Of a stretch of DNA of 64,000 nucleotides, positions 5,851-64,000 are shown in pieces. The stretch covers positions 237,615 through 301,614 of the forward strand of contig NZ_JMCB01000012.1 in NCBI RefSeq assembly GCF_000737315.1, read 5' to 3'. This stretch comes from Hyalangium minutum. Its GTDB lineage: Bacteria > Myxococcota > Myxococcia > Myxococcales > Myxococcaceae. Position 1 is the first letter of the stretch. Each line of letters begins with the position of its first letter. The notes under the pieces are model-generated. The model had not been told where the DNA came from and made no database searches. It worked only from the letters and a program-made list of their open reading frames with translations. The position numbers were made by a program, and so were the translations under genes.

Positions 5851-7257
5851 TCACTTCTTCGCAGCGTCCTGGCCCAGCTCCTGGGCCATCTGCGCCCCTG
5901 GATCGGGGCGCTTGTCTCGCAGGGTGACGAACTCCTCGGCGGCCGTGGGGTGGATGCCCACCGTGGAGTCGAGCTGCTTCTTCGTCACCCCACACTTGAG
6001 CGCCACCGCCAGCCCCTGGACGATCTCCGGTGCGTCCGCTCCCACCATGTGGAAGCCCAGCACCCGCCCGCTGGAGCGCTCGACGATGACCTTCATCATC
6101 GACCGCTCCTCCCGGCCGCTCAGCGTGTGCTTCATGGGCCGGAAGCTGGACGCGTACACGTCCACCTCGCCGTGCAGTTCCCGCGCCTCCAGCTCGGTGA
6201 GGCCTACCGTGCCCACCGGAGGCTGACTGAACACGGCCGACGGCACTCCGGTGTGGTCCATCTTCACGGGGTTGTTGTTGAAGAGCGTCTCCGACAGCGC
6301 CCGCCCCTCGGCGATGGCCACGGGCGTGAGGTTGAGTCGGTCCGTCACGTCTCCCACCGCGTAGATGCTCTCCACGGAGGTGCGTGAGCCCTCATCCACC
6401 ACCACCGCGCTGCGCGCGTCAAGCTTCACCCCCACCTCCTCCAACCCCAGCCCTTGCGTGTTGGGCACGCGCCCCGTGGCGAACATCACCGCGTCGGCCT
6501 CGGGCGTGTCGCCCATGCGCGTGAGCACGCTCAGCGTCCCGTCCGAGCGCTTCTCGATGTCGCGCACGAACACCTCGGAGCGGATGTCGATGCCCTTCTT
6601 GCGCAGCTCCTGCGTGAGGAACGCGCGCACGTCGTCATCGAAGCCACGCAGCACCGTGTCCCCGCGGATGAGCACCGTCACCTTGGCGCCGAGCGCGTTG
6701 AAGATGCCCGCGAACTCCACGGCGATGTAGCCGCCGCCCACAATGATGATCCGGCGCGGCAGCTCCTTCAGGTTGAGCGCGCCATCCGAGGTGATGACGT
6801 GCTCGATGCCCGGATGCTCGGGAAGGAACGGCCGCGAGCCCGTGGACACGAGGATGTGGGCCGCCGTGTACTGCTTGCCAGCGACCTCCACGGTGTGGGC
6901 ATCCACGATGCGCCCCCGGCCCTCGATGAGCTGCACGCCCGCGTCCCGGAGCAGGCGTTTGTAGACGCCATTGAGCCGGTCCAGTTCCTTGTCCTTGGCA
7001 ACTTGGAGCTTCTTCCAGTCGTGCTTCGGCTCGGGGACGGACCAGCCGAAGCCCGCAGCGTCCTCGAAGTCGTGGCGGAAGTGAGCGCCGTAGACGAGCA
7101 GCTTCTTGGGGACACAGCCACGGAGGACACAGGTGCCTCCTACGCGGTCCTCTTCGCAGATGGCGACCCGGGCGCCGTAGGCGCCGGCCCGGCGGCTGGA
7201 GGCCACCCCGCCTGAGCCTGCGCCAATCGTGAAGAGATCGAAGTCGTACTGGGGCAA
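5851..7257 (-). CDS. gor: glutathione-disulfide reductase
   Basis: GAGSGG FAD motif, GGTCVLRGCVPKK redox disulfide, GGGYIAVEF and C-terminal HPTAAEE. Confidence 0.93.
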   Translation of the reverse strand: MPQYDFDLFTIGAGSGGVASSRRAGAYGARVAICEEDRVGGTCVLRGCVPKKLLVYGAHFRHDFEDAAGFGWSVPEPKHDWKKLQVAKDKELDRLNGVYKRLLRDAGVQLIEGRGRIVDAHTVEVAGKQYTAAHILVSTGSRPFLPEHPGIEHVITSDGALNLKELPRRIIIVGGGYIAVEFAGIFNALGAKVTVLIRGDTVLRGFDDDVRAFLTQELRKKGIDIRSEVFVRDIEKRSDGTLSVLTRMGDTPEADAVMFATGRVPNTQGLGLEEVGVKLDARSAVVVDEGSRTSVESIYAVGDVTDRLNLTPVAIAEGRALSETLFNNNPVKMDHTGVPSAVFSQPPVGTVGLTELEARELHGEVDVYASSFRPMKHTLSGREERSMMKVIVERSSGRVLGFHMVGADAPEIVQGLAVALKCGVTKKQLDSTVGIHPTAAEEFVTLRDKRPDPGAQMAQELGQDAAKK

Positions 7258-7305
7258 AGTCTCCTCCCTCCGTCCGAGGTTTCCGGGAGGGCACCTTAGC
7301 CGGGC

Positions 7306-8391
7306 TCAGGCGCGAGCGCCGTCCCAGTCCTCGACTTCGTAGAGGAAGCGTGAACCACCCATCAGCTTGCGGTTCTGCGAGGTGCTCTGGACGAACACCA
7401 CGTACTTCTCCAGGTTGGCGGGGCGGATGCGAACCGTCTCGCCCGGCGGAAGCCCGAGCATCTCCCGCGCGCCGTCGCCGCTGAACAGGTCGCCCGTCTT
7501 GCGATCCATGAGGACGATCTCCTTGCGGCCCTGGATGGTCTCCGTCTTGGTGAACTCGTAGAAGCCGCGGCCCGCCTTGAACTTCAGGCCGTTCTCCGTG
7601 ACGAAGTTCTTGATGGGGCTGTCCTTGTCCACATCCAGGAACTGGAAGCGGCCCGGAGAGACGGCGCGTAGATCCGTGGCCGCGTATGCGGTGGGCGTCT
7701 CGCGCTTGAGCATGGTGTTGAACACCGTGTTCAGGCCGCGGGTCAGGCGGCCCTCCTTGGCCACCTCCGCCTCGTACGCCTGGAGCTTCATGTCTCCCGA
7801 CTGCTTGTAGCAGATGGCCAGCAGCGTATCGGTGATGTACGCGAACTGATCCAGGCTCAAGTGGAAGCCGCCGGACTTCTGCGCCAGCTCCTTGTAGAAG
7901 GCCGTCGCGTGGCGGCGGTTGAGCGCCTGCACGCCGTACACGGGGATGCCCATGCGTCCCAGCGCGTCCACCTCCACGCGCCAGTCCAGCTTGCGCGGGT
8001 TCTGGCTCGGCCCGTGCGGCACGTCGTCACCGATGAGCACGAACGCCTTCGTATAGCCCGCTGTCCAGGACAGCTTCTGCGCCTGGTGGAGCACCAGCTC
8101 GTAGCACTCGGGGGCATCACCGCCGCCGGTGGGCTCCACGCGCTCCACGAAGCGCACGATGGCGTCCTTGTCGTCCGTGAGATCCAGGAGCTTGGTGACG
8201 TAGGTGGATCCCTCGTCGCAGTAGTCGCCGTGCGCGATGACCCCAATGCGGATGCCAGGGATTTCCTTCATGAGACGCGAGACGGTGGCGCCCACCTTCT
8301 TTCGCACCTGCGCCAGGCACGGGTACATGCTGCCGGTAGTGTCAAAGCTGAAGACGATCTCGACGCGGTTATCGATCACCTCAGTGCTCAT
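7306..8391 (-). CDS. vWA-domain protein with uncharacterised C-terminal domain
   Basis: FDTTGSM MIDAS motif, GGGDAPECYE and LIGDDVPH; ATG at 8391 preceded by GAGGG; the upstream in-frame extension looks non-coding. Confidence 0.85.
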   Translation of the reverse strand: MSTEVIDNRVEIVFSFDTTGSMYPCLAQVRKKVGATVSRLMKEIPGIRIGVIAHGDYCDEGSTYVTKLLDLTDDKDAIVRFVERVEPTGGGDAPECYELVLHQAQKLSWTAGYTKAFVLIGDDVPHGPSQNPRKLDWRVEVDALGRMGIPVYGVQALNRRHATAFYKELAQKSGGFHLSLDQFAYITDTLLAICYKQSGDMKLQAYEAEVAKEGRLTRGLNTVFNTMLKRETPTAYAATDLRAVSPGRFQFLDVDKDSPIKNFVTENGLKFKAGRGFYEFTKTETIQGRKEIVLMDRKTGDLFSGDGAREMLGLPPGETVRIRPANLEKYVVFVQSTSQNRKLMGGSRFLYEVEDWDGARA

Positions 8392-47276: not shown

Positions 47277-48185
47277 CTAGCGAGCCTCGGGCTGGGTCAC
47301 AGGCCCAGGCTCGAAGAGCTCCTGAACGGACTGCACCACTACGGCCTTGCGGATCCAGAGTTTGAGCTGAGAGGGGTCCTTGCAGTTCAGGATGCGTTGG
47401 CGCGCCTCCGCATCCACCTCAAGGCCCCGAGCGTCAAGCACTTCGAACACGGCTGTCCGCTCGCCCTCATAGAGCCCCTCCTCACGCCCCTCCTCACGCC
47501 CTTGGGCTACATACTTCCGGGCAAATTCGCTCTGGTACTCATAGTTGCCTCGTTTCATCAGGTCCTCCAGGGCGACGCGAGCCGCCGCGCTGAGCGATGA
47601 CATCGCTAAATCAACGTAAAGGCGGACGCGCTCGGTATCAAGGCCCCTCACCGCCGCCATGACTGTCTTGACGATGGAGGCGCCTACCTCCTCGTGGCCA
47701 TGTGCCATGGCAGACAGCACCGCCAGTTCTGGATCATCGCGAGCAACCTGCTCCTCCAGGATGACTGGAATCGAGTTTGCCCCCATCACGAGAGGCCTGA
47801 GCGTGAACTCCGGATGCCCCAGGTCGATGGGCTGTCCACACCACCGTGCCACCGAGGCGTCCGGAGCGACCACCAGCAGCGCGGTGGGACACTTCACCCG
47901 TGAGCGGAGGCTGGTGAGGTACAACGGCCAGCTCATGCGCTTGTCCTCATCCCGTGACAGCTGCACTTCCACGACGATGGCGAAGACGGGCTTGCTGTCC
48001 GAGAGGAGGACCACCAGATCGGCCCGGTACTCGGTGGGCACCACCTGGGTGAGCTCTGCGGATTCCACCCGCGCCTCGGTCCACGGAGGCAAGCTCAGGC
48101 CCAGCGTGTCGCGCAGCAACTCCGGCGCCAGCGCAGGGCGGTTGCGAAACAAGAGCAAGAGTCCTTCGTGCTGCATCGAAGCCAT
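47277..48185 (-). CDS. Rpn/RpnC-YadD-like PD-(D/E)XK nuclease, copy 2
   Basis: EYRADLVV..VEVQL..DKRMSWPLY core; C-terminal QGREEGREEG repeats. Confidence 0.8.
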   Translation of the reverse strand: MASMQHEGLLLLFRNRPALAPELLRDTLGLSLPPWTEARVESAELTQVVPTEYRADLVVLLSDSKPVFAIVVEVQLSRDEDKRMSWPLYLTSLRSRVKCPTALLVVAPDASVARWCGQPIDLGHPEFTLRPLVMGANSIPVILEEQVARDDPELAVLSAMAHGHEEVGASIVKTVMAAVRGLDTERVRLYVDLAMSSLSAAARVALEDLMKRGNYEYQSEFARKYVAQGREEGREEGLYEGERTAVFEVLDARGLEVDAEARQRILNCKDPSQLKLWIRKAVVVQSVQELFEPGPVTQPEAR

Positions 48186-48193
48186 GGCTCAGC

Positions 48194-48215
48194 AACGTAG
48201 GAGATAGGTCTGACA
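48194..48215 (-). promoter_or_regulatory. TGTCAGAC-N8-TACGTT-N8-ATG leaderless-type promoter candidate
   Basis: Read directly on the minus strand. Confidence 0.55.
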
Positions 48216-48294
48216 ACTGCCGACCTCACTGGTTGGGGCGGCGATCTTGTGCTCCACTTCTGGAATGGCCTCGTTGCGGATCGACGGGTGACGC

Positions 48295-48516
48295 ATGCCC
48301 GTACACACTCCATCGTTGGACCTGCCCGGCGACTCCACCTGCCTCGACTGCGAAGGAAGGGGCTGGCTGCACATGACCAGCGGTTTGCATGGGCGCCAGA
48401 TTGAGCGCTGTGACTCGTGCCGCGTCTTCGGCATGGACGAACAGGCAGAGGCAGTGCACGACCAGGTCTGCGGCTGCTCGTGGGCCGGCTCCGAAGAGGA
48501 TGCAATGGACAGTTGA
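48295..48516 (+). CDS. small Zn-finger-like protein (CxxC...CxxC...CxC)
   Basis: CLDC, CDSC and CGC in 73 aa. Confidence 0.5.
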   Translation: MPVHTPSLDLPGDSTCLDCEGRGWLHMTSGLHGRQIERCDSCRVFGMDEQAEAVHDQVCGCSWAGSEEDAMDS

Positions 48517-48606
48517 TGTCAGCCAGGAAGCGCCTCACTTCAAGACCGCGAGAGCCAACCCCTCGGGTTCTTCACTCTCTTCCCTTGAAAACCTTCACTC
48601 TGGAGG

Positions 48607-49413
48607 ATGGAGCCACAACGGGCTTGGCTGGCGCTCTCCCTGGGTGCGGAACGCGAGTACGCAGGGAACGTGGGGTACGCCGATGAGCTGGACCGATGCA
48701 GGGAAGGTCACACGTTCGAGACCCCCAAGATTACCTCCGAGCCCTGTACCCACTTCGAAGCCCACTTTGAGGGCACATGCTTCCCAGTTCCAGGGCGCAT
48801 CCCTGTTCAAGAGGTGCGCAAGGCCTGCCCACGGTTCAATGGGCAACTGGCCATTCAAGCATTGGATCTGGAGCGCTTGGATGGCAAAGCCGCGCTCCTC
48901 CGCACCCTGTCAGCGTCACTCCAGCCCTCGCACCAGGAACCCTTGTTGTTCGCGCACGATGCCGCAGAAGACGCTTACGTCCCCAACGAACTGGACGAGC
49001 GCACGGTGCTCAAACGTCAGATCCGTGCACGGCGAGGACAAGCCACGTTCCGCCAAGCGCTCCGAGAGCGCTTCGACGACACGTGCCTCGTCACCCGTTG
49101 CAAGCTTCCGGATCTGCTCGAAGCAGCCCATATCTCTCCCTACCGAGGCCAGAAGGATCACCATCCATCGAATGGGCTCCTCCTGCGCGCGGACATCCAC
49201 ACGCTCTTCGATCTGGACCTCCTCGGGATTGACCCGGCGACGCTGCAAGTCCACCTGCACCCGAGGCTCCATGGCTTGGGGTATGACGCCTTTGCAGGGC
49301 AGGTGCTAGCATGCAACCCCCACCATCTGAGCCGAGAAGCGCTGGAGTCCCGCTGGGGTCTTTTTCAGGCCAATCTCCCAGCGGTGGGCTTCGCCCCCAG
49401 AGGAGAAGCCTGA
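48607..49413 (+). CDS. HNH endonuclease (HNH_2-type), possibly with an internal N-terminal deletion
   Basis: RRGQATFRQAL...CLVT...LEAAHISPY....SNGLLLRADIHTLFD. Confidence 0.85.
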   Translation: MEPQRAWLALSLGAEREYAGNVGYADELDRCREGHTFETPKITSEPCTHFEAHFEGTCFPVPGRIPVQEVRKACPRFNGQLAIQALDLERLDGKAALLRTLSASLQPSHQEPLLFAHDAAEDAYVPNELDERTVLKRQIRARRGQATFRQALRERFDDTCLVTRCKLPDLLEAAHISPYRGQKDHHPSNGLLLRADIHTLFDLDLLGIDPATLQVHLHPRLHGLGYDAFAGQVLACNPHHLSREALESRWGLFQANLPAVGFAPRGEA

Positions 49414-58643: not shown

Positions 58644-59744
58644 TCAGCGCGGGCGAAGCTGCCGGTCCAGTTCCACCACCTCCGTGCCGATGCCACTGCG
58701 CGTCCGCGAGTACCGCACGTCCTGGAGGACCACGCGGTAGCCGTCTGCCTGCTCCTCCACTCGGTAGGTGGGGAAGCGCAGCCAGTTCACGAAGCCTTTC
58801 ACCTCTGGAGCGGCAAGCGCAGCCTGGACGACCGGGCTGGGGGCCTCGCGAGGGATGGGAGGATGGCTGGTGCGGAAGCGCCCGGATTCTCCCGCCAGCC
58901 AGTCCAGCTCGATGAACTCGTAGCGGCCTGGGAGCAGTGCAATCACATCGCGTGTGAACGGGTTGGCGGGGAGTGGACCTGCGGCGACGCGCTCCGGCTC
59001 GGTGCCCTGCTGGCGCAGCCACTCCGCCACCTGCCGCTCCGCCAGCCGCGAGCCCGCGAACATCGCCACCATATAGAGGAGCAGCGTGATGCCGCAGACC
59101 GTGGCCACGCGCTCGATGCGCAGGGAGTGGATGCCTCGGATTCGCAGAGAGGCGACGGCGGCGACTCCCACCAGCCAGAGGGCCTTCAGGGGGAGCGGCG
59201 TCAGGTCCGTATAAAGGATGAGCCCCGTGGTCGCTACGCCGAGCACCAGCCATCCGGCGATGCTCCAGCGGGCGCGCGCATCCGCCATCACGACGGCGGC
59301 TCCCGCGAGCAGCCACATCCACGGGTCGATGATGAAGAGCGCGTCGCCGTAGAACCACCGCCCATCAAAGGGCATGAGCACGCGCACGCCATAGTTGTTC
59401 ATCCAGTCCAGCAGCGTGTGGCTGAACACGGAAAGGTAGGAGAGCAGCAGCAGCGGCCAGAACCGTGCGGGCTCCTTCTCCGGATGGCGTCTCCGGCGGA
59501 GGTACGTGTCCCCCAGCTTCACCGCGCCCGCGAGCATCCACGGCAGCACAGCCAGGGCGAGCACCCCGTGCGTGATTCCCCGGCGCAGCAGGAGCGAGGT
59601 GTCCGAGTTTCCCAGCACGGTGAAGCCGTCGATGTCCGGCAGGTTGGCGCCGAGCACGAGCGTCAGCGTGGCCAGCGGGGTCTTCCGCTTGAGGCCCGCC
59701 TCTCCCATCCAGGCGCCAACGAGCGAGTGCGCGAGGTTGTCCAT
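58644..59744 (-). CDS. membrane-bound metal-dependent hydrolase (YdjM/DUF457-like)
   Basis: MDNLAHSL, ANLPDID, RRGITH, SHTLLDWMNNYG and FIIDPW motifs. Confidence 0.88.
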   Translation of the reverse strand: MDNLAHSLVGAWMGEAGLKRKTPLATLTLVLGANLPDIDGFTVLGNSDTSLLLRRGITHGVLALAVLPWMLAGAVKLGDTYLRRRRHPEKEPARFWPLLLLSYLSVFSHTLLDWMNNYGVRVLMPFDGRWFYGDALFIIDPWMWLLAGAAVVMADARARWSIAGWLVLGVATTGLILYTDLTPLPLKALWLVGVAAVASLRIRGIHSLRIERVATVCGITLLLYMVAMFAGSRLAERQVAEWLRQQGTEPERVAAGPLPANPFTRDVIALLPGRYEFIELDWLAGESGRFRTSHPPIPREAPSPVVQAALAAPEVKGFVNWLRFPTYRVEEQADGYRVVLQDVRYSRTRSGIGTEVVELDRQLRPR

Positions 59745-59793
59745 GCGAAATACGCTAGCCTCTGGCCCTCGCTTGGCGAAGCCGACTTCCCAG

Positions 59794-60807
59794 ATGGAGG
59801 GCTCCTCCTCCCCGGCCGTGCGGACCCAGCTCGTGGGCCCGTTCCTCGGCTGGCTGCGCGCTCGCGGCCAGGACCCGAGCCCGCTCATCCAGCAGTTTCA
59901 GCTGCCTCCCGACGCGGAGTCGCTGCCCGAGCTCAGTCTCCCGCTCTCCACCCTCCGCGCCTTCCTCGATACCGCCGAGCAGCGCTCGGGTGATGCGTTC
60001 ATCGGCCTTCACGTGGCTCAGGCCTTCAAGCGCGGCACCTACGGCCTCGTCGAGTACATCGCTCGGGCCTCCCCCACCCTGCGAGACACCTTCCGCCGCC
60101 TCGCCCGGTACATGGCGCTCCTCAATGACCAGATGGTCGCCTCCTTCTCCGAGGACGCCTCCACTGGCACCTTCACCTACGGCGTCCCCGGCGAGCCCCT
60201 CTCCTACGGCCGCCACGCCAATGAGTTCGGCCTCGCCCTCTTCGTCCACGTAGGCCGCCAGCTCACCGAGCAGCCGTGGAACCCGCTCGCCATCTCCTTC
60301 GCCCACCCCGCCCCTCCTGACTTCGCGCCCCTCACCGCCCACTTCGGGGTCACCCCCTCCTTCGGTGGCGGCCTGAACGTCCTCACCCTCTCCGCCTCCA
60401 CCCTGGACCTCTCTGTCGTCTCAGGCGATCCCGTGCTGCTCTCTGTCCTCGAGCGTGCCGCCGGAACCCCTCCCGCACGTGAGCCCACCCCCGCCCTGCC
60501 CGAATTCGTCCAGCGCGTGCACGAGGCCATCCGCGGCTCCCTCCGCGACGGCGCTCCCAAGATGGAGACCCTCGCCAAGCAGCTCCACGTCAGCGCCCGC
60601 ACCCTCCAGCGCCGCCTTGCCGAGCACCAGACCACCTTCCAGGATGCCGTCGACGCGGTGCGTTGCGAACTCGCCCAGCAATACCTCCGAGACCCACACC
60701 TGGGCGTCAGCGAAGTGGCCTTCCTCCTGGGTTACTCGGAGCTGAGCACCTTCGACCGGGCCTTCAAGCGCTGGACCGGAAAGACTCCTCGCGAGTTCCG
60801 CGGCTGA
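59794..60807 (+). CDS. AraC family transcriptional regulator
   Basis: LAKQLHVSARTLQRRL and EVAFLLGYSELSTFDRAFKRWTG. Confidence 0.93.
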   Translation: MEGSSSPAVRTQLVGPFLGWLRARGQDPSPLIQQFQLPPDAESLPELSLPLSTLRAFLDTAEQRSGDAFIGLHVAQAFKRGTYGLVEYIARASPTLRDTFRRLARYMALLNDQMVASFSEDASTGTFTYGVPGEPLSYGRHANEFGLALFVHVGRQLTEQPWNPLAISFAHPAPPDFAPLTAHFGVTPSFGGGLNVLTLSASTLDLSVVSGDPVLLSVLERAAGTPPAREPTPALPEFVQRVHEAIRGSLRDGAPKMETLAKQLHVSARTLQRRLAEHQTTFQDAVDAVRCELAQQYLRDPHLGVSEVAFLLGYSELSTFDRAFKRWTGKTPREFRG

Positions 60808-60809
60808 GC

Positions 60810-60828
60810 CCTGGCGTCTTCCGCCAGG
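60810..60828. terminator. hairpin between the convergent AraC and DUF3396 genes
   Basis: CCTGGCG-TCTTC-CGCCAGG. Confidence 0.45.
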
Positions 60829-60834
60829 AGCAAC

Positions 60835-61764
60835 TCACTGGCAGAGACGCCGGAGCCAGTGTCGCATGTTGTCCTTGTTGAGGGGCGTGAACCATCCGTT
60901 GCGCTCCTCATACATGAAGGGCTCTAGCAGGTGAGCCAGCGCCTTGTACTGCGGCAGGTGCGGCTGCTTCTCAATGTCGATGGGGTCCGGCCACTCACCC
61001 AGGGTGATCAGCAGGCGCTCGCCCTCCATCGGCTCGAAGGCGACGTCCGGGAAGGCGAGCTTCGGACGCAGCCCCTCCAGTCCACCGAGCTCGCCCAGAA
61101 GTGGCTGTCCGAGGAAAGTGAGCCAGTAGGCCCCTCGGGCGCGCGTGCCGATGACCCGGCTGGTGGCACTGAGATCGTAGAGATCCAGGCCCAGGTAGCG
61201 GGGAAGCAAGCCGAGGAGTTCCTTGCGCGCGGAGTACCAAAACCCCCGTGGAGCAACAAACGCGAGGCTGGCATAGCCAAAGCTGAAGGGCAGTTCGCCC
61301 GCCAGTTGGAGCGCCAGAGCGCGCAGGTGGGCAGGACCGTGCTCCAAGAGGTATTCGGTGGGAAAGGAGAACGCCACCCCGCTGGTCGCCTCCTCGTCAT
61401 GCGAGAACATCGGATGATCGAGCCTCACACCGCAATATTCGAAATGGTAGTCGCCCGTCTCACTGGGATTATCGTCCAGTTCAACGTTCCAGCCTCCGCG
61501 TTCTGGCCCTGCTCGCTCCAGCAAGGTATGGCGAACAGCCTCCCAACCCTTGTCATCCAGCGGGAGCATGTCTCCCTCATTCGAGGCGTACCAAGACAAG
61601 GACTGCTGCGGTATGGCTCGGACATAGGTCTGCAAAGCGCGCCAGATGTCGAGAGCAATTTCTGGGTGGGAGCGGCGCATGAAAAAACAAATGACGACGC
61701 CGTCTCGTGCCGCCAAGACTCCGTCCTTCGTCCGCAGGCGGATGACAGGAATGCTCTCCCTCAT
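60835..61764 (-). CDS. DUF3396 (TsiV-like) toxin immunity protein
   Basis: FPTEYLLEHGP, LPFSFGYASL, RYLGLDL, GAYWLTFLG and GEWP motifs. Confidence 0.82.
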   Translation of the reverse strand: MRESIPVIRLRTKDGVLAARDGVVICFFMRRSHPEIALDIWRALQTYVRAIPQQSLSWYASNEGDMLPLDDKGWEAVRHTLLERAGPERGGWNVELDDNPSETGDYHFEYCGVRLDHPMFSHDEEATSGVAFSFPTEYLLEHGPAHLRALALQLAGELPFSFGYASLAFVAPRGFWYSARKELLGLLPRYLGLDLYDLSATSRVIGTRARGAYWLTFLGQPLLGELGGLEGLRPKLAFPDVAFEPMEGERLLITLGEWPDPIDIEKQPHLPQYKALAHLLEPFMYEERNGWFTPLNKDNMRHWLRRLCQ

Positions 61765-61994
61765 CGAACCATTCCGCTCTTGGGAGCAATGAGCACAGCG
61801 GGTCCCCCCAATGCGTCCTCGTAAACTCTGCGTTGATCGAGCCCCGAGTAGGCGCTGCGTTCCCTATACAGAGTCCACTGCGGACGGTTTGTATCGGGGC
61901 ACGGAAACTTGAAGTCGAATACACCCAACGCCATTCCCTCGTTTTTCCACGTGTTTTCTCCTTCCAGGGATATTTGAAGTTTGCGCCCGTTCAA
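61761..61994 (-). pseudogene. 5'-truncated C-terminus of a PD-(D/E)XK/VRR-NUC-like polymorphic toxin
   Basis: VFDFKFPCP...W..Y..Y...Q..VYEDALG; ATGA overlap with the immunity gene; no N-terminal part or RBS. Confidence 0.7.
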
Positions 61995-61996
61995 AT
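61972..61996. other. candidate recombination (att) site inverted repeat
   Basis: ATTTGAA-N11-TTCAAAT at the integrase stop codon in an AT-rich junction. Confidence 0.35.
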
Positions 61997-63099
61997 TACC
62001 CAGGACGGTTCTGCACCAAGTTGTTCACCACCTCCTGCTGCTGCTTCGCCGCCTGCCTCACCGCTGCCAGCGCGTCTCTATCCACCTCCTTACCTCGTAA
62101 GTTGTCGGCGTACAGCTGTAGGGTGTTGACGAACTTGTGGCCGGTGAGCGTCTTCGCCTTCTCCACGCCCACGGCCTTCACCGCCTCGGTGACGAAGGTG
62201 TGGCGGAAGCGGTGCCAGAGCTTGCCCGGGCGCACTCCCCGAATGGCCTTGGGGAACTCCTCCGGGCAGGCCGCGCGCAGCTTCTCCTCGAGCTTCTCCA
62301 CGTACGTGCCGTTGTAGGGGAAGATCCACCCGTACGCTTCCCCGTCCGGGCCGAGGCCGCCCGCGAGGCGACCGCGCTTGGCGCCGAAGAGCTTCTGCCC
62401 GCGCATGAGGGCCTTCCGCGTCTCCCGGAGGTAGTGCACCGTCTCCTCCGAGAGAGGGAACACGAGGCTGTTGGCGTCGTTCTTCAGCGAGTGCGGCTTC
62501 ATGAGTTTGCGGTCGCGTTGCTGCTGCACGTGCAGCTCCGGGCCGCCCTCCGCGTTCCAGCGGATGTGCCGCCACTCCACTCCCAGCGCCGTGCTCACGC
62601 GCATCCCGCCCTCGTGCCGTTGGAAGCAGAGGAAGGCTCTGGCCCGGTCATCCGGCATCGCCGCGAGCATGCGCGCCCAACTGCGCACCGGGTCTTTGAG
62701 CCCCTCCGGCTTGCGCGGCGCCGCCGGGAAGCGCTGGAAGGCCCCAGCATTCAGGAGCAGCGGCCACTTCAAGTCCCGCGCGCGCGCATACACTGTGTGC
62801 AGGTGGTCCTTCGTCATGTTGGCCGTGCCGGGCAGAATCTCCGCGCGCCCCAGGCGATCGGAGAGCCAGCCCTGGAGTTGCCCCCGGCTCGGCTTGGCGT
62901 GGTGCCCGAAGCGCTCCAGAGCCAGGCGGAAGGTGCTCGCGTAGGCCTTCTGGGTGTGGCGCTTCTGGTGCCGGAGGAAGGCCTTCTCGTACCACGCGAA
63001 GAGGGCGCCCAGCGTGGGCGTCTCCGTGAGGGGCAGTTCCTCTTGAGCCTTGGCCCGGGGCTTCTTCTTCGAGAGCGTCTTCAGGCGCTTAGTCGTCAT
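61996..63099 (-). CDS. tyrosine recombinase/integrase
   Basis: Full catalytic set: GMR (R), LKN (K), HRFRH (HxxR), TGH (H) and QLY (Y). Confidence 0.92.
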   Translation of the reverse strand: MTTKRLKTLSKKKPRAKAQEELPLTETPTLGALFAWYEKAFLRHQKRHTQKAYASTFRLALERFGHHAKPSRGQLQGWLSDRLGRAEILPGTANMTKDHLHTVYARARDLKWPLLLNAGAFQRFPAAPRKPEGLKDPVRSWARMLAAMPDDRARAFLCFQRHEGGMRVSTALGVEWRHIRWNAEGGPELHVQQQRDRKLMKPHSLKNDANSLVFPLSEETVHYLRETRKALMRGQKLFGAKRGRLAGGLGPDGEAYGWIFPYNGTYVEKLEEKLRAACPEEFPKAIRGVRPGKLWHRFRHTFVTEAVKAVGVEKAKTLTGHKFVNTLQLYADNLRGKEVDRDALAAVRQAAKQQQEVVNNLVQNRPG

Positions 63100-63481
63100 C
63101 CCGTTCCTGCCCTTCCAGCCGCGCTGAGAGTTCGTCGGCCGCCTCTCGCGTCACGTCGCTGGCCTCACTGAGCCGGGCGCGCGCCTTCAGCATTGCGGCA
63201 ACGGCTTCGAGGGCGAAGGTGGTGGGTCTACGGCCCGGCTTCCCTTCGAGCCCAGAGGGCAGCGCACGGGTGAATGCGGCCAACTCCTCGTAGGCCTTGT
63301 TGGCGTGGCCCATCGCCTTGCTGAGGTGTGCCAGGGCCTGCGCCGCCTCCTTGAGGCTCTCCTTCGTCTTCTTGCGTGCCTCGGCCGGCGTCGGTTCGTA
63401 GGCGCGGCGCTTCGTCTTCCCTTGGCCGTGCACAACGCGAAGCTCAGGAGTGTCCTTCGTCTTGTCGTTCTTCTCGCTCAT
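63089..63481 (-). CDS. small helical basic protein coupled to the integrase
   Basis: 130 aa, AGGA RBS, 11-bp overlap with the integrase start. Confidence 0.65.
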   Translation of the reverse strand: MSEKNDKTKDTPELRVVHGQGKTKRRAYEPTPAEARKKTKESLKEAAQALAHLSKAMGHANKAYEELAAFTRALPSGLEGKPGRRPTTFALEAVAAMLKARARLSEASDVTREAADELSARLEGQERDDD

Positions 63482-63575
63482 GTCTGGTGGTTCCTGTGGG
63501 GAGTGAATGGATCTTCCGGCGCGGGCTCGGCAGTGCTCCAGAGCCACGCCAGCCTGCGCACGGAGGTGGGGGGAG

Positions 63576-63983
63576 CTACTCGCTGGAGTCCTTGCGGCTG
63601 AGGCCTCTGCCGCTGTGCTCGCGGATGGCCTGCTCCTGCAGCTGCTCTTGGATTCGCCAGCTCTCCTCAACCCCCTTGCTCGTGCCCTTCAGTTCCACAT
63701 TGAAGGCGTTGAGGTACGTGTACGTAGTGGACGGCTGCTTGTGGCGGAGCATCTGGTGCAGATCCTCCTTCTCCATCGTCCCATCCAGCACCGCCTTGTA
63801 GTGGAGGACGGCGAAGGTGTGCCGGTACACGTGCCATGCATCCCCGCCGTCCACCCCGCGCACGCGCTTGGGGAAGTCCTGGGGCGACACGGCCCGGTGA
63901 ATCGTATCTGTTCGCCGTGCCCCGTCGTGACGAGGTGCTCCCCGGTGTGACACCTCATGGGCTCCAGACGAGGAGGAGTCCAT
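63576..63983 (-). pseudogene. second tyrosine recombinase, C-terminal portion
   Basis: FPKRVRGV..WHVYRHTF..LRHK..TYTY; recognisable similarity fades upstream of about 63905 although the frame stays open to the window edge. Confidence 0.65.
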
Positions 63984-64000
63984 GGAGAAGGAGTTGGAGC

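Follow-up and report, generated by a model that had tools for sequence, protein, structure and literature searches.

The 64 kb with which contig JMCB01000012.1 of Hyalangium minutum (assembly GCA_000737315.1) closes, here called the window, with position 64000 as the end of the contig, raise a question about how interbacterial toxins are lost. Close to that end, a tyrosine recombinase gene (int1) stands directly against the 3' remnant of a toxin gene, while the gene that follows, tsiV, which encodes the predicted immunity protein, is whole. Is such an arrangement a device for switching or collecting toxins, or is it a ruin? An earlier note on this DNA had proposed devices of both kinds. The analysis presented here makes it probable, on balance, that the locus represents an orphan immunity module lying where a degenerate and composite integrative element ends; the toxin would have been lost in a rearrangement there, and tsiV would have been kept by selection and probably be expressed by read-through. 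The module consists of the intact tsiV and a 3' stub of its cognate toxin that is, in all likelihood, catalytically dead; the preferred reading is that it arose by one-way decay and is neither a programmed switch nor an array of cassettes.

On the minus strand the order is the 3' part of int2, orfX, int1, the small open reading frame (ORF) with the toxin stub, and tsiV, after which comes a convergent araC-family gene. The features are as follows.

63998..63576, minus strand: int2, a second tyrosine recombinase, 3' 140 codons, open at the contig end (translation and H-x-x-R box)
63481..63089, minus strand: orfX, 130 aa (193 aa from TTG 63670), called as a gene in the public record
63099..61996, minus strand: int1, a 367-aa tyrosine recombinase, apparently intact (PF00589 match, catalytic residues)
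61995..61938, minus strand: AT-rich spacer of 58 nt, from the int1 stop to the toxin stub (composition)
61937..61761, minus strand: toxin stub, 58 codons plus stop, in the listed ORF 61994..61761 (toxin-family profile)
61764..60835, minus strand: tsiV, a 309-aa immunity gene (PF11876, TsiV/DUF3396)
60808..60834, no strand: 27-nt gap between the convergent stops of tsiV and the araC-family gene (read from the sequence)
59743..60807, plus strand: AraC-family regulator, 354 aa, the first ordinary chromosomal gene beside the module (Pfam Arabinose_bd and HTH_18; public record)

A Toxin Stub beside an Intact Immunity Gene

The toxin was searched for with a profile of 267 positions, made from 19 family toxins (16 database proteins and 3 read from loci). 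In the window this profile matches 61764-61937 only, from 'GMALGVFDFKFPC...' to the end, which corresponds to positions 210-267 of 267 (E 2.8e-25); the rest of the six frames of 61700-62500 and the whole window gave no further match. The earlier note had described a decapitated toxin, recognizable only from about GVFDFKFPC onward, next to a spared immunity gene, and the profile bears out this description. The stub keeps the residues D-F-K and lacks the invariant P-D together with everything upstream, so the catalytic core of the toxin is not retained. Because these elements are absent, the stub is almost certainly catalytically inactive. For the effectors TseV2 and TseV3, toxicity is reported to be abolished when the conserved catalytic Asp is replaced (PMC9635880). 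With the stub as query, an exhaustive phmmer search retrieved 49 cluster representatives, and the matched region is C-terminal in all of them except P0140, a low-complexity repeat protein; a word-indexed protein search with the 77-aa ORF gave no match.

The immunity gene, on the other hand, is complete. The tsiV product matches PF11876 over positions 2-271 of 271 (E 1.4e-57, 195.6 bits against a cutoff of 25), and at none of the 97 columns that are invariant among 14 aligned TsiV proteins, of which the window's is one, does the window copy have a lesion. It has 430 homologues at E<=1e-10, the best of which come from Hyalangium spp. and are 73-74% identical over 100% of the length, and it matches the solved structure 7DRG (PA0821) at E 1e-5. 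The stop codon of the stub (TGA, 61763-61761) overlaps the start codon of tsiV (ATG, 61764-61762), and the same ATGA coupling is found in intact pairs; the coupling to an intact DUF3396 gene that had been described earlier (overlap 61764-61761) is thus confirmed, along with the full-length PF11876 match. TsiV is known as the immunity partner of VRR-Nuc/PD-(D/E)xK effectors (PMC9635880). That tsiV serves as the immunity gene for the toxin family described below is a prediction from genetic linkage, namely the ATGA coupling in intact relatives. Among the matches of a full-text literature search for DUF3396 there was, going by titles and abstracts, no myxobacterial study.

Base composition sets this module apart. 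The GC profile falls to 0.56-0.60 at 61400-62000, compared to 0.68-0.72 in the flank, and the limit of the lower-GC block is the 27-nt gap at 60808..60834, in which a hairpin with a 7-bp stem (60810-60816/60822-60828) and a 5-nt loop can be drawn. The GC content at third codon positions (GC3) is 0.905 for int1, which resembles host genes in this respect, 0.61 for the stub, and 0.75 for tsiV, while the araC-family gene has 0.865 and the flanking host genes 0.87. Because the GC3 of int1 differs from that of the stub and tsiV, the recombinase and the immunity module have different compositional histories. The genes are packed as tightly as in an operon, with an 11-nt overlap of orfX and int1, a 1-nt gap between int1 and the stub ORF, and the 4-nt overlap of the stub and tsiV. 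There is no terminator-like site between orfX, int1, the stub, and tsiV; the single such site in 60700-64000 lies inside int1 and on the wrong strand.

The Parent Toxin Family

The genes located directly upstream of the closest TsiV homologues are ATGA-coupled, and their products, about 270 aa long, begin with a lipoprotein signal (e.g., MPARQ...LLAAC). The ends of these proteins, ...KPDIVLHADR...LTLDFKFPCPDTN.P.WT.Y...SAY.G..QG.IY..ALGG...ISP, are homologous to the window ORF from ALGVFDFKFPC on. Full-length members are 261-296 aa long and consist of a lipobox, 60-80 variable residues, and then the nuclease core, a conserved region of about 190 aa with the motifs EC..AE..VN, LG.EKH, EQRYRY, PD, and DFKFPC. 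Family members occur at L002:7183-8004, L004:7285-8004, L007:8069-8890, and L013:4973-5953 (L numbers denote the loci collected for comparison) and as proteins P0138-P0175.

The residues P206, D207, and K226 are invariant in the family and D224 is nearly so, which gives a PD...DxK signature. The core of a family toxin was modeled by AlphaFold (AF2) with a pLDDT (predicted local distance difference test score) >90, and its best but weak Foldseek matches are Cas4, NucC, and NlaIV, which are PD-(D/E)xK nucleases (best E 0.067; Cas4 probability 0.91). Profile searches of the family against Pfam, including VRR_NUC, NCBIfam, and PDB sequences gave no match, and no PAAR or other T6SS (type VI secretion system) marker is present in the family toxins. 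Signature and modeled fold suggest a family of lipoprotein nucleases of about 270 aa; the family is apparently uncurated, and its members are in every case ATGA-coupled to TsiV.

How Often Is the Toxin Broken?

TsiV loci were gathered by exact homologue look-up and by a metagenome scan and were scored with the toxin and TsiV profiles; 17 TsiV genes, the window's included, have readable upstream DNA. The toxin is intact upstream of 9 of the 17 and broken upstream of the other 8, in the following ways.

L006: 3' stub, profile positions 234-266
L020: 3' stub, profile positions 222-267
L024: 3' stub, profile positions 211-266
Window: 3' stub, profile positions 210-267
L014 and L034: IS66 (insertion sequence) in the toxin gene, both halves kept
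L028: in-frame deletion in the toxin
L037: frameshift in the toxin

Because 8 of the 17 TsiV genes adjoin a broken toxin, decay of the toxin, with TsiV left whole, is ordinary, and a decapitated toxin beside an intact TsiV is a common outcome in this family and not an unusual one. All four stubs amount to the last 22% or less of the toxin gene, and their breakpoints vary and fall inside the nuclease domain. No integrase is found near the stubs of L006, L020, and L024. At two of these loci (L020:3993-8157 and L024:2292-5601) a complete toxin-TsiV pair is followed by a stub-TsiV unit, with an unrelated ORF between them in L020.

These results divide the earlier suggestion that mobile DNA disarms the toxin while sparing immunity. 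Within the family the suggestion is correct, as the IS66 insertions in L014 and L034 illustrate, but int1 need not have made the window stub, because the similar stubs of L006, L020, and L024 stand without an integrase. The two IS66 insertions (L014:2674-6004 and L034:1669-4200) are in a similar place, at profile positions of about 130-146, with the downstream TsiV intact, and they may represent one inherited event or two. At a further locus, L027, two TsiV genes are adjacent and the second is frameshifted.

The Recombinase Genes

The match of int1 to PF00589 is weak (E 2.4e-5, 24.6 bits against a gathering cutoff of 27.1). However weak, it is accompanied by the full catalytic set R-K-H-R-H-Y, as residues R167, K206, H296, R299, H321, and Y330 are invariant in an alignment with three homologues. 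These three, with 56, 48, and 39% identity, are the only ones among 5.8 billion proteins, and the int1 family is rare: one homologue has a named source, Stigmatella aurantiaca, and the other two are metagenome proteins. A scan of metagenome contigs with the integrase alignment gave no match, and genome contigs yielded 27-30% relatives only. Two 1-kb metagenome contigs contain, set in unrelated DNA, an int1-like internal pseudogene fragment of 280 nt that covers codons ~60-153 with 86% nucleotide identity (L015:640-919 and L016:304-583); judged by this identity, it is a decayed copy of an int1-family recombinase. An origin of int1 from a known phage was rejected, since tblastn against 50,697 phage records found no relatives and viral contigs scanned with the integrase, and also with TsiV, gave no match.

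The second recombinase gene, int2, is cut by the end of the contig and lies 95 nt upstream of orfX and int1. Its translation includes an H-x-x-R box, 'WHVYRHTF', and a likely catalytic Tyr; over 36 catalytic-box residues it is 53% identical to int1, and it matches both int1 and the L007 integrase at E 1e-9. A cluster look-up with the int2 fragment found no full-length paralogue. The contig break within int2 may mean that int2-type sequence is repeated in the genome.

As for orfX, it has no Pfam or NCBIfam match. It shows a weak likeness (31% over 83 aa, E 0.02) to L007_136, which in turn shares 51% identity with the ORF that immediately precedes the integrase in S. aurantiaca, and orfX probably serves the recombinase module as an accessory gene. 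In the window no tRNA gene was found, and Rfam families gave no match.

Loci of int1-Family Integrases

The surroundings of int1-family integrases could be read at two independent loci, S. aurantiaca and L007; L008 is an identical copy of L007, and the contig of L039, which carries the 39%-identical integrase, is too short. In S. aurantiaca DW4/3-1, the closest homologue (56% identity), a conserved upstream ORF and an IS66 element precede the integrase and a convergent oxidoreductase gene follows it, and neither a toxin nor an immunity gene is a neighbor at the locus. In L007, a metagenome locus (48%), the integrase is followed by a 5'-truncated Ser/Thr kinase gene, a 273-aa toxin, TsiV, and, further on, a gene of the SMI1_KNR4 immunity family. 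The integrase stop is located ~40 nt ahead of the kinase, which lacks the N-lobe (Pfam profile 122-258), and the missing 5' half of the kinase was not found in the 5.7 kb upstream of the integrase. The intact toxin-TsiV pair is co-oriented with the integrase, 1.2 kb downstream of it. A distant relative with 30% identity, at L009, shows the classical arrangement and adjoins tRNA-Gln.

The earlier note had proposed surveying homologous integrases for adjacent immunity genes, and would have counted a lack of association with toxin/immunity genes as a refutation; an association was found, however: a toxin-TsiV pair lies within 2 kb of the int1-family integrase at one of the two independent context loci (L007). 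None of 22 further TsiV loci, all metagenomic, has an int1-family gene. If a density of about ten TsiV genes per 10-Mb genome is assumed, the chance of a second integrase-TsiV linkage is ~0.003; because of this estimate, the link between the int1 family and the toxin-TsiV module is taken as real, whatever its nature may be. Between the window and L007, the integrases are 48% identical and the TsiV proteins 50%.

At its end, the L007 kinase (6857-8053) has a transmembrane segment together with a Cys-rich domain (DMPK.PF.GQ...CWF...C...GY...G.CY.P), and the same domain (33% identity, E 2e-13) is present in a 267-aa protein at L007:2531-3334, 3.4 kb upstream of the integrase.

The Junction between int1 and the Stub

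The stub ORF starts at TTG 61994, one base past the int1 stop TAA (61998-61996), as had been reported, and all coordinates given before were borne out. The description of the two genes as fused was not, because they are in different frames, which makes an int1-stub protein fusion impossible, and the 58-nt AT-rich spacer lies between int1 and the stub. TTG 61994 is merely the first possible start codon of a frame that is open from 62024. Nucleotide homology to intact toxin genes begins at ~61916-61936. The spacer (61938-61995) has 45% GC, compared to 68% for the genome, and no copy of it was found elsewhere in the window or in the other loci examined. A possible remnant of toxin homology in the spacer and under the 3' end of int1 ('TTWCRTV', resembling 'LWRTI') was rejected, as the six-frame profile search is blank upstream of 61937.

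The spacer carries two GGAAR repeats, and a 12-mer, GGAAAAACGAGG, at 61937-61948 directly abuts the stub. With one R position, this 12-mer (GGAAARACGAGG) occurs once per locus at window 61937-61948, L007 6899-6910, and L009 3420-3431. In L007 it is 9 nt past the integrase stop and just ahead of the truncated kinase gene, so that in both the window and L007 it forms the integrase-side edge of a truncated gene; in L009 it is inside the 3' tail of the 30%-identical integrase. GGAAR repeats cluster at the stop codon of all four int1-family genes (in L039 at ~1340-1395), with a combined p of ~4e-4 in a post hoc test. The four integrase tails diverge past a Gln run in the alignment, and homology to other integrases ends near there. 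The 12-mer and the GGAAR repeats could be recombinase-binding or attachment (att)-related sites, or else a remnant of C-terminal tail coding sequence that these genes have in common. No direct or inverted repeat was found at the junction within 60700-64000, nor any att-like repeat elsewhere in the window or in the loci.

One could go further and suppose that this rare recombinase family recombines at its own stop codon or a little past it, at a site that GGAAR repeats and the 12-mer mark, and has repeatedly been joined there to gene interiors, disarming or capturing TsiV-type toxin-immunity units. This supposition is unlikely to be right. If it is true, the family would give Myxococcota a counterpart of the recombinase-associated acquired interbacterial defense (rAID) systems, or else a switch that turns toxins on and off, and would thereby shape the repertoires of kin discrimination.

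Decay or Device?

In the reading preferred here, the 5' 78% of the toxin would have been lost when the edge of the recombinase element was rearranged, either by integration, whether inside the toxin gene or a short way upstream of it, or by an adjacent deletion. tsiV would have been retained because it still protects against neighbors that deliver the intact toxin. It would be transcribed by read-through of the orfX-int1-stub-tsiV string and translated from a ribosome-binding region located inside the toxin 3' end, an arrangement that would also explain why a stub is always kept. Because a second recombinase gene lies upstream, the element is regarded as composite, and its clean excision as unlikely.

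Several points weigh against this reading. The event that removed the 5' part of the toxin cannot be reconstructed, as the contig ends 2 kb upstream. The stub may predate the element, with the integrase a mere neighbor, because the stubs of L006, L020, and L024 exist without one. The closest known cognate toxins are only ~55-63% identical to the window in the stub region, which bears on the protection that tsiV would afford. Finally, no sigma-70-like promoter was predicted in 60700-64000, in a scan that is uninformative for myxobacteria.

The first of the competing explanations to be weighed is one of the two proposed in the earlier note, that toxin-stub/immunity units are gathered by the int1 family at a place directly 3' of the recombinase gene, which would make it a myxobacterial counterpart of the Bacteroidales system rAID-1. 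This is quite unlikely, even if the window and L007 both have a 5' recombinase followed by co-oriented, lower-GC immunity DNA (TsiV and then SMI1_KNR4 in L007), and even if the composition break and the short motif 3' of the recombinase stop echo rAID-1 (10.1101/471110). The window contains a single immunity gene and lacks intergenic repeats, the unit of L007 is not an orphan because its toxin is intact, and the closest homologue, that of S. aurantiaca, has neither a toxin nor an immunity gene as a neighbor. The low chance estimate for a second linkage, which depends on the assumed TsiV density, speaks for the idea, whereas 0 of the 22 metagenomic TsiV loci have an int1-family gene and the linked loci number two only. 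Capture of cassettes in the manner of rAID-1 is unsupported.

The other proposal of that note was a switch: an element with int1 at its extreme end would have inserted at about codon 210 of the toxin, the 5' half would lie at the other end, and precise excision would restore the toxin. The position of int1 agrees with it, since int1 is at the very edge, it ceases to resemble other integrases near the Gln run, and the stub begins 58 nt past its stop. The related integrase of L007 likewise stops ~40 nt before a 5'-truncated gene, that of the kinase, and the same 12-mer is present at both junctions. There are precedents as well, as phage Mx8 has its attachment site in the integrase gene, which acquires a new 3' end on integration (PMC6070905), and L014 has mobile DNA inside a toxin gene with both halves kept. 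The rest of the evidence makes this proposal very doubtful. The other 61.8 kb of the window have neither the 5' half of the toxin nor an att repeat of the junction, so that a switch restored by excision is unsupported. What lies upstream of orfX-int1 is another recombinase and not cargo, which implies at least two stacked events, and a single excision would not restore the gene. The L024 stub (profile position 211), whose breakpoint is within a few codons, arose without an integrase. Moreover, the usual targets of tyrosine integrases are conserved sites, tRNA genes for example, and the L009 relative does lie next to tRNA-Gln.

It is also improbable that the toxin-tsiV pair was carried as cargo at the integrase-proximal end and that a later deletion of ~2 kb, from just past the int1 stop into the toxin, left the stub: L007 does show the proposed ancestral order (integrase, gene remnant, toxin, and TsiV, all co-oriented), the integrases (48%) and TsiV proteins (50%) of the window and L007 have diverged to a similar extent, and sitAI loci are said to be frequent on mobile DNA (PMC8546572), but the GC3 of int1 (0.905) against that of the stub and tsiV (0.61/0.75) speaks against long co-residence, the window TsiV is far closer (73-74%) to alleles without integrase linkage, and the end of the deletion would have to coincide with the 12-mer that precedes the truncated kinase in L007.

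Elsewhere in the window, a small block at 47277-49413 stands amid high-GC3 housekeeping genes with a weaker coding signal, and it may be a further small insertion. None of its ORFs passed the filter GC3 > 0.78 plus GC2 (the second-position value) < 0.62. They include a 302-aa ORF without a Pfam match (47277-48185, minus strand) and a 268-aa ORF for an HNH_2 endonuclease (48607-49413, plus strand; PF13391, E 9e-13).

Comparison with Known Systems

The preferred reading, that of an orphan immunity module left by decay, has its closest parallel in the orphans of contact-dependent inhibition (CDI) and Rhs systems. Poole et al. (2011) described these as a toxin fragment that is 5'-truncated and lacks good translation signals, with an immunity gene behind it that is intact and can be expressed, and in E. 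coli EC93 an orphan immunity gene is cotranscribed with upstream genes (PMC3150448). The window likewise has a 5'-truncated toxin fragment and an intact immunity gene; furthermore, the stub-TsiV units of L020 and L024 stand in tandem behind a full pair, and IS elements interrupt some copies. The differences lie in the toxin. In CDI/Rhs orphans the toxic C-terminal domain is complete, beginning at a conserved VENN or PxxxxDPxGL boundary, and it is still toxic when re-fused (PMC3150448), whereas the window break is inside the nuclease domain, between PD and DxK, and the stub breakpoints (210, 211, 222, and 234) respect no conserved boundary. In addition, the family toxin, as a small lipoprotein, is unlike the giant filament and Rhs proteins, and the upstream neighbor of the window stub is the int1 recombinase instead of a main toxin gene, with the contig ending 2 kb further on. 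By analogy, the window module would work like these CDI/Rhs orphans and like the orphan immunity genes of the T6SS.

The TseV/TsiV pairs described by Hespanhol et al. (2022) share with the myxobacterial family the PF11876/DUF3396 immunity protein, a partner with a PD...(D/E)xK motif, and an immunity gene immediately downstream (PMC9635880). Unlike TseV, the myxobacterial toxins have a lipoprotein signal peptide, no PAAR or T6SS marker, and no VRR_NUC match. The SitA/SitI system comes from the same organisms and also joins a lipoprotein nuclease toxin to an adjacent immunity gene in one operon, with many copies per genome, often on mobile DNA (PMC5562445, PMC8546572). SitA, however, is defined by an escort domain of ~375 aa (PMC8546572), and the family toxins, with ~270 aa in total, are too short to contain it; judged by the escort domain, the window locus is not a SitA locus.

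With regard to the recombinase, Ross et al. defined rAID-1 by a XerD-like recombinase at least 44% identical to BF9343_RS08045, by at least two co-oriented downstream genes (up to 31), and by integron-like repeats (10.1101/471110). The 5' tyrosine recombinase, the co-oriented immunity DNA of lower G+C, and the short conserved sequence 3' of the recombinase stop recall this system. In contrast, the window has one complete immunity gene (stub and tsiV being co-oriented and of lower GC) before the convergent araC gene, its junctions lack intergenic repeats, and the 12-mer occurs once per locus. Like Mx8 (PMC6070905), the int1 family has its integrase gene at an extreme edge and C-terminal tails that differ past a fixed point, the Gln run; unlike Mx8, int1 is not related in sequence to any phage integrase, and a tRNA target is absent from the window.

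The window locus is a further case of an orphan immunity module, which differs from those known by the cut in the catalytic domain, the small lipoprotein toxin, and the recombinase neighbor. Only the repeated link to a rare integrase family is unusual.

Significance

Kin discrimination in myxobacteria rests largely on the toxin-immunity pairs that a strain carries. To drop a toxin and keep its antidote changes whom a cell can kill, not who can kill it, and this immunity-only state is found in roughly half of the loci of the lipoprotein-nuclease/TsiV family. At two loci, a recombinase gene directly abuts a 5'-truncated gene; if this reflects the activity of the recombinase, it would provide a concrete mechanism by which such repertoires are edited.

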